Source: Octopus sinensis (Eukaryota). Taken from it: a DNA stretch of 64,000 nucleotides. A program made the translations under genes and the position numbers. Positions within the stretch are counted from its first letter, which is position 1. Each line of letters opens with the position of its first letter. Below the pieces are notes generated by a model that saw only the letters and a program-made list of their open reading frames with translations, had not been told where the DNA came from and ran no database searches. This document shows, piece after piece, positions 8,547 to 24,991 of this stretch. The stretch is from contig NC_043006.1 of the NCBI RefSeq assembly GCF_006345805.1, positions 83,080,001 through 83,144,000 of the forward strand. Reading direction: 5' to 3'.

Positions 8547-9432
8547 GGTGTGTGCATGTATGTGCACGCGTTTTGTCTGTGTCTGTGTGTTATTTATATG
8601 TGTGTGTGTATATATGAGAGAGTAAGCGAGTATGTGAGTGTGCGCATGCGTGTGTGCATGTGTTATATTTATCTAACCCTGACGGTATATATGTGTAATC
8701 CGGAGATCGTATGTGTATATATACATGTATGTGTGCGTATATTATCTGTGTATATGTGTTTTGTTTATTTGTATATGTATGTGTGTATGTGTATGAAAGT
8801 GAGTGACTGAGTGAGTGTGTGCGTGCGTGCGTGCGTGTGTTCTATCTGTCTATCTCTGATGGTATATATGTGTAAGATGCGTGATCCGGAGAGTTTAATA
8901 ATGGTGTCAATAGCAGCGACGATAGCTGGAGTTAAATTGACGAAAGGGTGGATTGGTGATGTGGGGGTGGGGGGTGGAATGCTGAAGAAAGTATTCAATG
9001 ACGCTGGTGTGTTCAATGTTTTTGTTTTCATTGGTGAGAAGGTCAACCTTGACATTGAATGACACTGAAAAATATATGGAGAAGGAGAGAGAGAGAGAGT
9101 ATGAGTGAGATTGATTACGTCATATAGTGTGACAGTGAGATAGAGTGAGAGTTAAGTAGAGGGAGAGAGGTAAAGAGAGAAAGAAGTATAGAGGGACGGA
9201 GGTAGAGAAGGAGAAAGGCAGCGAAGAAAGAGCCAACTACGATAGAGTTTGGAAGAGAGAGAGAATGTTAAGGAGAGAGGGAGAGAGTTGTGGAGCAGAG
9301 AGTAGAGTTAAGAGGTTAAGGAGAGTGAATGAAGTAGAGTAGAAGAGAGAGTCAGATAGAAAGGAAGAGAGAGTGTAAGGAAGAGAGAAAAGGAAAAGAG
9401 AGATAAAGATACAGAGAAGAGTATATATGTGA

Positions 9433-9524
<92 letters not shown>
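9433..9524. repeat. (GAAA)n tetranucleotide microsatellite
   Basis: Long pure gaaa run. Confidence 0.95.
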
Positions 9525-9650
9525 AGGGGGTCTAGATGACAGAAACGAAGAAAGAAAGATTTAGATAACGAAAGTGCCACAGAGAAAGAGAGAAAGAAAG
9601 AGAGAGGGGCCGAGTGGGCCCCAGAGCTCATGAGGTGGCACATGTATATA

Positions 9651-9834
9651 TATTTCTTTACTACCCATAAGGGGCTAAACATAGAGGGGACAAACAAGGA
9701 CAGACAAACGGATTAAGTCGATTACATCGACCCCAGTGCGAAACTGATACTTTATTTATCGACCCCGAAAGGATGAAAGGCAAAGTCGACCTCGGCGGAA
9801 TTTGAACTCAGAACGTAACGGCAGACGAAATACG
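9651..9834 (-). mobile_element. SINE family A host copy, 3' portion (B box, body, Tx1-like tail)
   Basis: Minus strand cgtatttcgtctgccgttacgttctgagttcaaattccgccgaggtcgactttgcc...tttagccccttatgggtagtaaagaaata; continues the head found at 15154-15210. Confidence 0.92.
9822..9834. repeat. Target-site duplication, left copy (cagacgaaatacg)
   Basis: Identical 13-mer at 15154-15166 flanks the other end of the LINE. Confidence 0.92.
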
Positions 9835-10078
9835 AATTTCTTTATTGCCCACCGGGGGCCAAACATAGATATGGACAGTACAACTGATGGGATCAGTGAA
9901 TCGATATGATTTTACATAAATGTGACATCAAAAATAAAATACAATACATAAAAATCGAATGGAATACACAGTACAAAAACAATACAAATGAAGCGATGAT
10001 CAAGTTACGCTCCGATCCCACAAGCCCCGATCTACCGCTGATACCTTTTTATTTTTCCTTTTTTTTTTCCTCGTCTAT

Positions 10079-13000
10079 TCACACGGTTCCTTGCACGCAC
10101 AACACTCGTGCAACATACTTCCATCTCTTTTGGAACGTACACTCTGACAGACACCTCTTCTCCAGCCACAGTTTCCTTTTCAAATGAAAAGAAAAAAAGG
10201 ATCGTAAATTGTCACCAGAGATAAAGTTGCCTGTCTTAATTCCTTTTATCCTAGTCTTCCATACAGCCTCTTTTGCTATTGCTACAACCGTGAGAAAACA
10301 ATTCTTACCTTCGTTCGTTAGAACTCCCGGTGGGTCAATTTTTATAATTGACTCAGTCGACAGCCGTACTCTTCCTTCGCCGGACAACAGATGTTCAGCA
10401 TAAGCCCACATTTCAGTTATCTCCGGACACTGAACAATAGCGTGAGGGACGGTTTCCCTGTCCCCCCCCCGCATCTTGGACAGGTCGGCGACTGACGTTT
10501 ACCATGTCTTGCGAGCTTATCCCAAACGGGCAAGGCACCTCTGTAGCATTGCCAGGTTAAGGACTTTTGGAAGTTGTCCAACGTTCTCAACCCGAATGTA
10601 CGATGAAACAAGCTGTCCAGTTGAATAAATCCGAGACCTAGAGTCGACCCCAGGCCATCGTCGCATTCAGACTCTACCAACCCACTATATAAAATCCGTG
10701 CGGAACCCCCACCGCTGGCGTTGCCCGAGCGCCGGAACAGCAAGAGGGCCTTACGGCACTCTTTATGCCACTCACTCGACCTCGGTCTACGAGAACACCA
10801 GGCTTCCTGTTCGCAAAAACTCTTGAACTCAGGGAACATTTGTCTGGCCAGCAGAGACCACACCCGTTCACTATCCAGGAGAATCCAGAGGTGCCTCAAC
10901 CTCAACGCATGTCTGCGCATCATTAACCAAGGCATCCCTAAACCTCCATTTAAAGGCTTTTGACAGCAGACAGAGCGTTTCACAAGTGGCGACCTGCCCT
11001 TCCACAAAAAGCGAAAGAGCTGTCTCTCCAACCTGATCAACCACGAATCCGGACAGGGCACGACGGTCAGGCGGTAGGTAATGACCGATGCGATAAACAC
11101 ATTGGCCACTTCCGCCCTCCCTTTCAGGGATAGCCACCGCCAAGACCAGGTCTTGACTACTGCAGCCACCCTGCTCAATACCTCCGTCCAGTTCTTCTCT
11201 ATCTGGAGGCCTGCTCCAAACCAGACTCCCAGCAACTTAACCGGTCCCTCCGTCCAGCGCCTAACAACACTATCTGAAGGCATCGACTTGCCAACCCAGG
11301 TGCCGAGCTGCAAGCCGACCGAGTTTTCCCGGTTAATCTTTGCTCCTGCTACCTCCTCGTAAGCCTCAATAGTCTTACCTACTTCACGTAGGCGTGCCAC
11401 TGTGGTTACACTGATAGTGATATCATCCGCGAAAGCCGTAACAAACTCCTCTAGTCCTGGTTCTCTCGGGATGCCACTCAACCTTTGCAGTAATGGCTCG
11501 AGAGCCATCACATACAAAAGTGGTGAAAGCGGACATCCTTGACGAACCGAGCGTCTGATGCAGAACGGCTTCGAAAGGAAACCGTTCACCCGAACTATCG
11601 AGTCAATGTTGTGGTACAAAGCGATAAACCACCTGAGGAAGCTAAGGCCCAGGCCAAACCGCGCAAGTACAGTCGCTAGGTATCGATGGTCAACCCTATC
11701 AAAAGCTTTAGACTGGTCCAAATGCACCAATGCCCCACCTTTGCCAGATTTATTACCAAACCTCTCTATGGTATAGCGAATAAGATGGAGGGTATCCTGA
11801 ATGGTTCTGCCTGGGATGGCACATGTCTGTGCCTCCCCGACTATACCATTCGCGACACGCGCCAACCTTTTTGCTAGAACATTGGCCAAAATCTTCACTT
11901 CTGCGTTTAACAGAGTGATGGGCCTGAAATTCTCTAGAACGTCCCCCTTGTCCGGGTCCTTTCTGACCAACGTCACTACTCCTCGGCGCACAGATCTGGG
12001 GATAAACCCATTCTGTTTCCAGTTCGCGTACACGTCAGTCAGTAGTTGCCCGAACAAGTCTGCCATACATTTATACAGCTCGTACGGAAGACCATCAAGT
12101 CCCGGTGACTTACCCGCTTTACAATCGGCCAAAGCCTCCATCACCTCCTCAGGTGTGATTGGCCCTTCGCAAGACTCCGCATCCGACCCCGAGAGGCACG
12201 GCAGCCCGGTAAGAAAGTCCCCGAGGGCTCTCCCACCACCAGGACCGCCGTCACCCCCGAACAGCTGGGCGAAGTACTCCTGAGAGACCTCACACATTTT
12301 CTCGGGTTCGTTTATCAAGACACCATTTTGATTCGTCAAAGACCGAATAGAGGAACTATTTCCTTGCCGAGCTTCCACCACTCGGGCCCATCCAGCGGCT
12401 TTGATTCCTTCACTTCTCATTGCACGTAACTTAGCTCTGGTAATACTTCCCATGTGGTGGGCTTCAAGATGCTGGTTTAACTCCAGTCTTTTCACCCTCG
12501 CTTGGTCTGTATTACCAGTCCTCCAGGCTTCTTCTAGTTCCTTAACTAGACCATCTCCTATTTTACGTCCCTTCTTAGCTAAACTTATGCTAAACCTAAT
12601 AGACTCATATTTGATGGCTCTTTTTAGGGCGTACCACCATTTGTTATTAATGATGGTACATGTTAATGCCCTCTGTATTAACATCTTGATCCGCTTTCTG
12701 TACTCCTCAATCGCCAAAAGGGACGTACTGAGTTTCCAGTAGCCAGATCCCTGTCTATGCAACTTATCTACCGTCAGTTTACAGGTAACCATCTTGTGGT
12801 CACTGTAGCTGACTAGAAAAAACTGTGGACACTCAACTATGGACTTACCTTTTTCTCTAATTAAAATCCTATCTAGATATGTTCTGGTAGACCCGTCACT
12901 ATTTGACCACGTCCACTGTGAAGTGTTCGGGTGCTCCAACCTATATGGATCTGCTAGCTGAAATTGACTTAGCAGATCCCGAAAGCCTGGGTTACATTTT

Positions 13001-13447
13001 CTGTTCATGTTCGAGTTTGAGCCAACACAATCTGTGTGTGCTGCACATATTGTATTAGAGTCTCCTAACACTACTAGTGAATGCGACGTGGCTAGGAACT
13101 TTCCTAGGCCACGAAAATATTCAGTTTGCGGGCCAATAATGTTTGGTGCGTAAATAGCCACAACTGAATGTCAAGTCGAGAACGACCAGCCTGCCTTCTG
13201 GGTCAGAAAAACCAACTTTTTCTCGGCTACCCGGTTTCTTTTTAGTAGGACCAACACCCCACCCCCACCTCCCGCCCGACTCAGAGAAACGTATTTCTCG
13301 TAGCCGTTCAGGAGGGGGAGCAGATCTCTTGGCCCCTTCACCCGGGTTTCCGTTGCAACAATTACATCCAAATTTCTCGACCTGATGTCATTGCTTCCAG
13401 CTTGACAACAGGCCGTGAACATTTAAACAACCAATGTGAATAGCCAT
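10079..13447 (-). CDS. LINE ORF2 (APE endonuclease, reverse transcriptase, CCHC finger), disrupted
   Basis: ATG at 13447 (MAIHIGCLNVHG), ATETR, VAIYAPN, VLGDSN, YLDRILI, SDH; RT motifs SPGLDG, RPITLLN, QGCPLSPLLY, FADD in the 914-aa frame 10417-13161; CPRCGG..ETVPHAIVQC split by a shift at the G9 run near 10465. About three shifts in the endonuclease region plus this one. Confidence 0.92.
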
Positions 13448-13458
13448 CACTTACCTGT

Positions 13459-14986
13459 TTAATTAGGATTGTCCGGTGGAGGGGGACCCTCCACCTTTTT
13501 TTGATCCAGGGTCGGAGGTGGACGGTCTTGGGAAATAGATTTGTCAAAATCCCGTCTCACCACCGACACAGAATTATCAGGTGGAGGGGGAATCTCCACC
13601 TTTTCCTTTTCTCGCGGGATCGGAGCTGGTAATCCCTGAAATATCGACTTGTTAAAATCTAATCTCAATGAAGATACAGTCTTTCTGTACTTATTTTGTA
13701 GAATTCTATAAGTCTTATTTGAGACTTCATATATGTCGTAATTGATAAATTCCTCTGAAAGGTTATCAATTTTTTTACAGTCTTTATGAGTTGAATGTCT
13801 CTCATGAGCTCAGTATCTTTAGTGTATACGGCTATTATGCCTTTTTCTTCTTTTTCTCTTCTGGCAGTCTTTTTTGGTCGTTGTTCTGTAGTAGTCGCCG
13901 CTCTCGGCTGGTTGCTGGTTGTATTTTTCTTTTGTTTGTTGTTTTTTTCACATCTGTTTCTTCTTTATCTTCTTCCTCTTTGTCTTTTTTCTCCTCTTCC
14001 TCCTCTTCTTCATTTTCCTTGCAGTTCCTTCGAATGTGGCCTAATTGACCACATAAAAAACATCGAGGTTTTCGGCCCTCAACAAACACCACGAGGTTCT
14101 CCTCCCCTACCTCAATTGTCTCAGGAATTGTTTGAATTATTTTAGGGTCCGCTTGAATGAGAAGATTAATTGTTTGACCATCCCAGCGTGGGTTTTCCGT
14201 AGCGGTAGCCTGGAGGAGAGTAATTTTTTCTACCTCTTTGATTAGGACTGCCGCCAACAACCACATATGTTCGACCTCTGGCGGGACCCTTGTAATTTTT
14301 ATTCGCGACGTCCTCATCCCCCTATAATAGGGGATTAACTCCACGTCGTTTGTTTTCAGCGTTTCAACTGAGTTCTTGTTTGCTATTTCTTTATTGGTGA
14401 ACCTTACTTCCACCGTTCCGAATTTTTTTCCTCTTCTCAGAAATACTACGTCGCCCAATATTGGCTTTAAGCACTTTTCTATTTTCTCTTCTGACATTCT
14501 TTCAATTTTTCTTTTTTGTAGACAATATGTTTTGAAAATTATTGTTTTTTGCTTTTCTTCCTGTAATAACTTTTGCGGAGGTTCAATTTTCACACCGTTG
14601 TCAGTTATTTCCATCATTTTGCTGTATTTCATAATTTCGCTTTTATTCGCCGACAGTATCTGGGTTCCACACCCAGCAGCCAACGCAAAACTTTTTTTTC
14701 CATTTTTTGGTTCTATCTGGATGCTAGGCACATCAATTATTCTCTTCGACACAATGCCTTTGTTCTCTGGCAAAGTCGGAAACTCTTCTGGTGAAAGTTC
14801 TGACGAGCTCTCAGACACATCTCCAAAAATATCAAATATATTATCCTCTCTGCTATCCCTTCTTGTAGCGGGGGAAACCCCTATTTCCTTGTCTGTATTT
14901 GGCTCCTCGCCGGACATGTATTTCCTCCTCTCAACAGGAGAAACAAGTATTTCTGCTCCAACGGTAGGCTCCATGCTAGACGACAT
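13459..14986 (-). CDS. LINE ORF1 (nucleic-acid binding, zinc knuckle), frameshifted near 13835 and 13790
   Basis: First ATG at 14986; CFLCGQLGHIRRNC (CX2CX4HX4C) followed by an acidic/basic tract; reading resumes in other frames (GIIAVYTKD.., KKIDNLSEEF..) and ends in a Pro-rich tail with TAA 11 nt before the ORF2 ATG. Confidence 0.85.
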
Positions 14987-15153
14987 TCTTCCCCCCAAAG
15001 GGGGAATGAACAACGCGTGCTACCACAAGCACTAAGTGTTTTCAATTGAAAACTCCAACAGTTAAGTTATTCAACAGTTTAACAAGAAACAACAGTTGTT
15101 AACAATATTAACACCACGAAACAGCAATTCTTACTTCACGAACACATGTGCGA

Positions 15154-15210
15154 CAGACGAAATACGGCTACGCATTTCAACCGGCGTGCTAACGGTTCTG
15201 CCAGCTCACC
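15154..15210 (-). mobile_element. SINE family A host copy, 5' head (A box), including the right TSD copy at 15154-15166
   Basis: Minus strand ggtgagctggcagaaccgttagcacgccggttgaaatgcgtagccgtatttcgtctg; joins 9651-9834 into one normal SINE when the LINE and one TSD are removed. Confidence 0.92.
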
Positions 15211-15399
15211 AGTCTCGCAATACCGTCCGGCCAAAAGAGGACTGTGCCAATGGTCTATCCGGTAAACAAATTGGTTCCATTTGACACTGAAATATCTCAC
15301 AATGTCCCGGTTATAATGAAGGAATCTCAAATGTACAACATTTCCAAGAACTCTGCAATAGCAACAGTTCTCTAACAAACTTGCCTCATTGTTTGGAAT

Positions 15400-24769: not shown

Positions 24770-24991
24770 TGGATAGAAACGTTAGCACGCCGAGCGAATT
24801 GTTTAGCAGGATTTCATCTGCCGCTACGTTCTGAGTTCAAATTCCGCCGAGGTCGACTTTGCCTTTCATCCTTTCGGGGTTGATAAATTAAGTACCAGTT
24901 ACGCACTGGGGTCAATATAATCGGCTTAATCCGTTTGTCTGTCCCTGTTTGTCCTCTCTGTGTTTAGCCCCTTGTGGGTATTAAAGAAATA
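24770..24991 (+). mobile_element. SINE family A with Tx1-like tail
   Basis: Head remnant, B box, body, tail gtttagccccttgtgggtattaaagaaata followed by ggtat. Confidence 0.85.

Follow-up and report, generated by a model that had tools for sequence, protein, structure and literature searches.

A 64,000-nucleotide stretch of the Octopus sinensis genome (assembly GCF_006345805.1, contig NC_043006.1, forward-strand positions 83,080,001 to 83,144,000; hereafter the window) contains a long interspersed nuclear element (LINE) that is inserted into the head of a short interspersed nuclear element (SINE). The two elements share a 3' tail and a landing site, and this site lies within the SINE itself. 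Our analysis suggests that the SINE is probably mobilized by this LINE or by its close or older relatives. For the fuller reading, in which a sequence-specific LINE has made its own non-autonomous SINE its landing pad, and insertion of SINE into SINE turns a dispersed repeat into 184-bp arrays and gives birth to a satellite, we consider the balance to be even.

The LINE inserts at one place in the SINE head, [C/G]GTATTTCGTCTG(C). Read on the minus strand, the locus in the window consists of the SINE head (15213-15154), the LINE (15153-9835), the target-site duplication (TSD; 9834-9822) and the SINE body ending in its tail (9692-9652). With the final 300 bp of the LINE as query, the genome gave 381 first-look candidates, 40 of which were scored (98-100% identical); 20 loci were fetched with 8 kb each, and 19 of these contain a full-length copy about 5.35 kb long. 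Each of the 30 3' junctions in the sample reads AAAGAAAT-T-[C/G]GTATTTCG... and then continues into a SINE body. At the other end, a SINE head ending in the same 13-14 bp stands upstream of the window copy and of all 19 other full-length copies. The TSD of the LINE is thus 13-14 bp long, and its first base (C or G) is identical on both sides in 20 of 20 cases; even rare variants are duplicated on both sides of the LINE, such as CTTC at locus L039 and CGAC at locus L040.

Genome-wide, there are 161 exact LINE tails, and 111 of these (69%) are followed by any two nucleotides (NN) and the exact 10-mer GYATTTCGTC. Since the exact 10-mer misses 5 of the 30 true sites in the junction sample, the real site occupancy is above 111/161. 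The host SINE belongs to the LINE-tailed subfamily in at least 27 of 30 LINE insertions, and a LINE-like tail is present on only 4 of the approximately 26 SINE-superfamily matches in the window. The specificity of the LINE for this site in the SINE is strict and extends to the subfamily that shares its tail, which bears out the proposal of a first-pass annotation that this subfamily carries the target site of the LINE. The sites that the LINE occupies are preceded by a SINE head in 20 of 20 cases and by a SINE tail in none; tail-preceded sites are at least as numerous in the genome as head-preceded ones (23,346 versus 15,914, from exact patterns of similar length).

The target is part of a predicted stem-loop. 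The SINE head (consensus positions of about 30-62; for example, 15154-15185 on the minus strand of the window) folds as a 13-bp stem with a UAGC loop (z = -2.0), and the right (3') arm of the stem is exactly the 13-bp segment that is duplicated. The bases closing the loop differ between subfamilies by a compensatory double change, T..G to G..C, and pairing between them is possible in 96 of 100 listed unoccupied copies. Independent variation would give 54%, and the kinship of the copies inflates the observed figure. If the left arm is required, this would account for the restriction of the LINE to head-preceded sites. Two copies of the SINE in the window, at 45716-45745 (+) and 51745-51811 (-), lack both the target and the right stem arm owing to an internal deletion of about 30 nucleotides (nt), and would be protected from the LINE.

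Two other explanations of the locus structure were rejected. The SINE head might have been carried along in the LINE transcript, which was suspected from the fact that 15 of the 19 heads are of the GCGTAGCC variant; the same variant, however, is the commonest among unoccupied sites (55 of 100 listed). Nor is the head-LINE-body-tail structure a single, randomly inserted mobile unit, since the host bodies differ in subfamily, deletions and truncations, and since the inner duplications share locus-specific variants while the outer duplications belong to the SINE.

The second element of the argument is the shared tail. The host SINE tail (about 9651-9692, minus strand) reads TGTCCCCTCTATGTTTAGCCCCTTATGGGTAGTAAAGAAAT(A), and its global alignment with the 3' end of the LINE (9836-9877, minus strand) has 33 matches in 42 positions and one 1-nt gap. 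This reproduces the alignment made by hand in the first-pass annotation, whose coordinates were right to within 1 nt, and the same tail is present at all three of the other places where it had been reported (24950-24991, 45870-45912 and 46050-46095). An unbiased local alignment of the whole LINE with the SINE consensus finds a single similarity, 28 of 34 positions, which ends at the last base of both (AAAGAAAT); as in a stringently defined LINE/SINE pair, the similarity is terminal in both elements and occurs nowhere else. Its score is 43, compared to 18.7±2.6 (maximum 32) in 300 shuffles and 20 in a reverse-complement control. A sub-variant of the SINE tail, GGGCAATAAAGAAAT, would lift the match with the LINE to 31/34, as counted by eye. 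A small hairpin, with a 4-bp GCCC/GGG[C/T] stem and a 5-nt loop, had also been described as kept in both tails. Minimum-energy folding does predict it for the LINE end and for one SINE variant, but these folds are no better than those of shuffled sequences (z = 0.3 and 0.2), and the hairpin was therefore dropped as evidence.

The third element is the insertion of the SINE at the site used by the LINE. Our genome-wide SINE figures are exact pattern counts, for which a control with the pattern reversed always gave 0. The SINE tail CCCCTTGTGGGYARTAAAGAAAT occurs 97,289 times; it is followed by NN and GYATTTCGTC in 23,346 cases (24%) and by AGGTA in 47,127 (48%). The tail of another SINE subfamily, GGCCTTGTGCCAAAATTTGAA, which served as a control, occurs 11,627 times, with the 10-mer within 0-30 nt in just 7 cases (0.06%). 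The junction of tail and site is therefore specific to the LINE-like tail, by a factor of about 400. The LINE and the SINE use the same site to within 1 nt, so that the pair is stringent in its integration signature as well. The junction at 45914 in the window is of the same type as the other 23,346 in the genome.

Individual loci point to insertion of SINE copies into older SINEs. At L044, an old head ending in GGCATTTCGTCCGTC is followed by a 5'-truncated young SINE, its tail and a C, then GGCATTTCGTCCGTC again and the old body, a nested insertion with a 15-bp duplication that includes rare variants. Of approximately 14 junctions sampled, 5 have an old SINE from a different subfamily on the downstream side. 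The old units in these five junctions have a pairwise identity of 0.77 and the incoming units 0.92, which argues that they represent independent arrivals and not copies of one dimer. Exact junctions to sites of the older 'CCGTCTTTA' type number 322, dispersed among the chromosomes; this count is a minimum, given that few old sites are still exact.

These observations are consistent with the following mechanism. An APE-type, two-open-reading-frame (ORF) LINE of the L1 superfamily would integrate by target-primed reverse transcription at the one site in the SINE head, with a first nick immediately 5' of [C/G]GTATTTCGTCTG and another 13-14 nt further downstream. The 34-42-nt tail of the SINE would have been copied from, or be shared with, the 3' end of the LINE. 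Given this shared tail, the proteins of the LINE, or of close or older relatives with the same tail, likely recognize the SINE RNA, and would insert it with the same endonuclease preference; SINE copies would then land at the site in other SINEs as well as at other A/T-rich or AGGTA-like sites. Where SINE inserts into SINE, we propose that cDNA and target anneal through their homologous heads and that this resolves the 5' end. The incoming head would merge with or replace the resident head rather than duplicate it. The outcome would be arrays of the form head-(site-body-tail)n, repeating every 184 bp, and some of these may later be enlarged by local duplication. Such arrays are present, many SINE tails being spaced 184-189 bp apart among the matches listed. 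In the heterologous junctions, the old resident head is gone and the head that is present is of the young type. These junctions are mostly AGGTAT, even before old-type sites, which points to a SINE template in which AGGUAU follows the tail. An extension of this kind (a 3' end running into AGGUAUUU) would be expected if the source copies themselves sit in the site, and it could pair with the nicked target.

Several observations weigh against so simple a scheme. Junctions of site and head number 179 in the genome, compared to 23,346 of tail and site, so that more than 99% of the SINE-into-SINE joins lack a duplicated head; the 179 do include 5'-truncated heads and 65-66-bp head arrays, as fully nested insertions predict. 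The units of the L039 array are 93-99% (up to 99.4%) alike, compared to 0.89±0.04 between loci, and many tail-site junctions may accordingly have been duplicated from existing ones. At L032 and L041, outer duplications of 16-17 bp enclose an entire two-unit structure, and many SINE copies lie at sites outside any SINE. Directly after the tail, the LINE has a T where the SINE has an A. In about 88% of the SINE junctions, tail and site are separated by the dinucleotide AG, although the second of these two bases is C in 55% of unoccupied sites; this preponderance of G hints that the junction is partly inherited with the unit and not taken from each target. The tail variant nearest to that of the LINE (GGGCAA...) is followed by AGGTA or the site in about 1 of 100 cases, compared to about 17 of 100 for all tails, among the matches listed. 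Finally, the sampled LINE copies are 97-98.4% alike and the genome has 161 exact LINE tails, whereas about 10^5 SINE units exist, with an identity of about 89%.

The sampled LINE copies are much younger than the SINE tails and about 600-fold rarer; some SINE units are 0.99 alike. The LINE clearly lands in pre-existing SINEs. The suggestion that each new SINE makes a new landing pad for both elements stands in part. The LINE occurs only at sites with a SINE head upstream (20 of 20), and SINE-into-SINE joins almost never add a head; usable new pads arise only from SINE insertions outside SINEs, which are also common.

The mismatch in age and copy number is one reason to consider that most of the SINE amplification was the work of another Tx1-like family, older or different, whose tail was similar, and that the young LINE is a later relative to which both tail and site preference were passed down; in that case the loop would be a property of the lineage and not of the young LINE family. 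The modest identity of the tails (28/34) and the existence of a third tail variant, GTCGCCCCTAGTGGGTAATAAAGAAAT, would fit this account, as would a published annotation of Octopus vulgaris in which 13 L1-Tx1 families are recorded as recently active (421 insertions with a mean length of about 5.4 kb, site specificity unmentioned; PMC13282606). We nevertheless regard it as rather unlikely, since the nick positions of the LINE and the SINE agree within one base, the duplications are of similar length (13-14 versus about 15 bp), the LINE family retains intact ORFs and very young SINE arrays exist.

A less probable alternative is that the SINE is not aimed at the site at all and that a few founding dimers or multimers were spread, either by retrotransposition of multi-unit RNA or by tandem duplication and unequal crossing-over of 184-bp units. 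The exact 184-185-bp spacing in many arrays (among the matches listed) would follow naturally from such founders. So would the likeness of the L039 units, the nearly constant AG, the near absence of head duplication and the outer duplications around two-unit structures; other parts of SINEs also form satellites (window 50957-51497; 115-bp arrays). Against it stand the young units joined to old, independently diverged SINEs in 5 of about 14 junctions, the 322 dispersed exact junctions and the nested copy with its own truncated head and 15-bp duplication. In addition, several other adjacent unit pairs are no more alike than random ones (0.855-0.892 versus 0.89). An origin of all tail-site junctions from one dimeric master is ruled out for the junctions to old, diverged SINEs, though such a master still contributes in part. 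Judged from the likeness of units, SINE array growth is partly by local duplication, and founding dimers likely account for part of the junction count, not for the phenomenon.

Borrowing in the reverse direction, whereby a LINE within a SINE was read through to the SINE tail and acquired that tail by deletion or recombination, so that no recognition of the tail is needed, is highly improbable: read-through is easy to imagine with a SINE body and tail about 185 bp downstream of every LINE copy, and the similarity is limited to the last 34-42 nt, but this leaves unexplained why only SINEs with the LINE-like tail adjoin the site, no intermediate structure occurs among 20 LINE copies, and the scenario is in any case compatible with, not opposed to, a later shared recognition.

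The closest precedent for the octopus pair, in which we infer trans-mobilization, is found in crocodilians, where a single Mariner transposon, Mariner-N4_AMi, is the preferred target of both Tx1-Mar LINEs and SINEU SINEs (Kojima 2015, PMC4494074). In that system tandem SINE insertions sandwich a TSD, and the partnership was inferred from the common target (PMC4494074). Both systems combine a Tx1-type LINE and presumed partner SINEs with a common preference for one repeated element. The crocodilian target, however, is an unrelated DNA transposon and the SINE heads derive from small nuclear RNA (snRNA), whereas in the octopus the target lies inside the partner SINE and 184-bp arrays result. The Tx1 families with known targets in a figure of the same paper insert into transposons, microsatellites, satellites, U2, U5 and 5S, with no SINE among them (PMC4494074). 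Among the elements cited there, Xenopus Tx1L inserts into Tx1D, Keno targets U2 snRNA, and Kibi and Koshi target microsatellites (cited in PMC4494074). Like the octopus LINE, these are L1-related APE-type elements with sequence-specific integration into a multicopy target; unlike it, as far as they are described in that context, they insert into targets that they would not mobilize themselves.

Two other well known systems resemble the octopus pair in part. R2 and R1 in ribosomal DNA (rDNA) comprise autonomous elements and short, internally deleted derivatives that share one exact site, and their 5' junctions have been proposed to form by annealing of cDNA to the homologous upstream target. 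R2 has another type of endonuclease, the target of R2 and R1 is a host gene, and their non-autonomous forms are deletion derivatives; these partners, unlike those in the octopus, are not SINEs with an RNA polymerase III-type head. Alu elements insert in the A-rich regions of older Alus and give rise to SINE-in-SINE clusters, so that here too the SINE offers sites favored by the endonuclease of its LINE. The Alu/L1 pair, however, has a loose TTTT/AA preference and relaxed recognition of poly(A), whereas the octopus pair has a specific site of 13-14 bp and a specific shared tail. No description of a self-targeting LINE/SINE pair was found in full-text searches of the literature, which did not extend to Repbase and Dfam.

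Site-specific LINEs are thought to persist by using multicopy 'safe' targets such as rDNA, snRNA genes, microsatellites and other transposons. In the octopus, the safe target appears to be the dependent SINE of the LINE, which would couple the fates of parasite and hyper-parasite. If this is true, the SINE supplies the LINE with tens of thousands of harmless targets, each a conserved head stem-loop, and the LINE supplies the machinery for spreading. Spread of the SINE would create targets for the LINE, and SINE hits would turn scattered copies into tandem arrays. Insertion of the LINE separates head from body in the SINE, between the putative A and B boxes, and probably silences the copy that is hit. 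The loop may account for part of the large SINE load of octopus genomes. The system also appears well suited for studying long-site specificity in APE-type endonucleases, homology-guided 5' junctions in target-primed reverse transcription and the origin of SINE-derived satellites.

The features of the LINE and of the related SINE copies in the window are listed in Table 1.

Table 1. Coordinates of the LINE, its duplicated target and copies of the LINE-tailed SINE subfamily in the window
Feature	Position	Strand	Details
LINE copy, full-length, degenerate, 5,319 bp	9835..15153	-	Matches 19 other genomic copies over whole length
LINE 3'-terminal 42 nt resembling SINE tail	9836..9877	-	By alignment; letters TGTCCATATCTATGTTTGGCCCCCGGTGGGCAATAAAGAAAT
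ORF2 remnants	10079..13170	-	917-amino-acid open stretch with RVT_1 at 10417-13170
ORF1 remnants	13459..15019	-	394 amino acids including CCHC zinc knuckle at 13835-15019
Upstream TSD copy, 13 bp, CGTATTTCGTCTG	15154..15166	-	
Downstream TSD copy, 13 bp, CGTATTTCGTCTG	9822..9834	-	
Host SINE head, consensus 1-63, cut from body by LINE	15154..15213	-	Left arm of stem and loop; target is right arm
Host SINE body and tail, consensus 48-230, 97.8% to consensus	9652..9834	-	Tail 9652-9692, then ATATATA
Solo SINE, same subfamily, positions 15-230	24775..24990	+	Followed by AGGTAT and unrelated DNA
SINE unit 1 of pair	45716..45911	+	Head deletion of about 30 nt removes target; body and LINE-like tail
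SINE unit 2 of pair	45914..46093	+	Starts exactly at target (GTATTTCGTC...), after tail of unit 1 and AG

The LINE family is about 5.35 kb in length and has two ORFs. The window copy is 97.0-98.4% identical, end to end, to the 19 other full-length copies; it begins with TCGCACATGTG and ends with ...GGGCAATAAAGAAAT-T. Both of its ORFs are broken: the C-terminal piece of ORF2 (10079-10498, minus strand) and the continuation of ORF1 (13459-13809, minus strand) are frameshifted, and the N-terminal endonuclease part of ORF2 is disrupted. The ORFs are intact in some other genomic copies, with a 1,134-amino-acid ORF2 in L031, L033 and L045 and a 520-amino-acid ORF1 in L044. The L031 ORF2 contains Exo_endo_phos (2.3e-10), RVT_1 (2.3e-29) and zf-RVT (2.3e-7) domains, that is, an N-terminal APE-type endonuclease, a reverse transcriptase and a C-terminal zinc-binding region, the order found in the Tx1 clade. 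Its best solved relative is human L1 ORF2p (2e-63, residues 6-868, 217 bits), and homologues with the same architecture include a coral protein (321 bits) that has been automatically named 'Transposon TX1'. On the basis of these domains, the match to human L1 ORF2p and the architecture of the homologues, the LINE is assigned to the L1 superfamily, and it probably belongs to the Tx1 clade.

The SINE is short (about 230 bp), non-coding, dispersed and present in very high copy number, and it is flanked by target-site duplications, as expected of a SINE2 element. Six of the host SINEs lie outside SINEs, with outer duplications of 11-17 bp in unrelated DNA, two of these enclosing two-unit structures. 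The head folds as one long hairpin and contains, as judged by eye, a B-box-like GTTCAAATTCC and an A-box-like TTAGCACGCCGG. A tRNA origin of the head was considered but gained no support from ARAGORN, which gave no match, or from Rfam, which gave no tRNA match.

Some copies of the SINE form composite structures. Two LINE copies on different chromosomes (L042:6823-6900 and L046:6849-6925, both on the minus strand) lie in the same composite repeat, which consists of the GTCGCCCCTAGTGGGTAATAAAGAAAT tail variant, an A and a SINE that starts at position 15. Many SINE copies begin at position 15 directly after a tail (AAAGAAATAAGAAACGTTAGCAC), which suggests dimer families or template switching at an AGAAA microhomology.

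Tandem arrays are also formed by other segments. Arrays of head plus site with a 65-66-bp period (C1:195358941-195359245 and C7:15322770-15323079) mirror the 184-bp body-tail arrays, and are expected from repeated, fully nested insertions or from their duplication. Window positions 50957-51497 contain a tandem array of four 135-bp units (up to 99% alike), which derive from the 3' portion of a different SINE subfamily, and 115-bp arrays of the control-subfamily tail are found elsewhere in the genome (for example, C1:41263074-41263897).

Among the sampled LINE loci, L048 (the same as L015) and L028 have host SINE bodies that end about 60-90 nt past the LINE and are followed by unrelated DNA; these may reflect later deletions or insertions, or LINE hits into SINEs that were already truncated. 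L005 (C8982:10280) and L011 (C16:16483115) share the same LINE flank, SINE deletion and downstream DNA, and the unplaced contig with L005 is probably a haplotig that duplicates the chromosome segment. Microsatellites are very dense throughout the window, with (AAAG)n adjoining the host SINE at 9420-9530 and many (TA)n, (CA)n and (GATA)n tracts, and several tails of the LINE-tailed SINE subfamily run directly into (AT)n.
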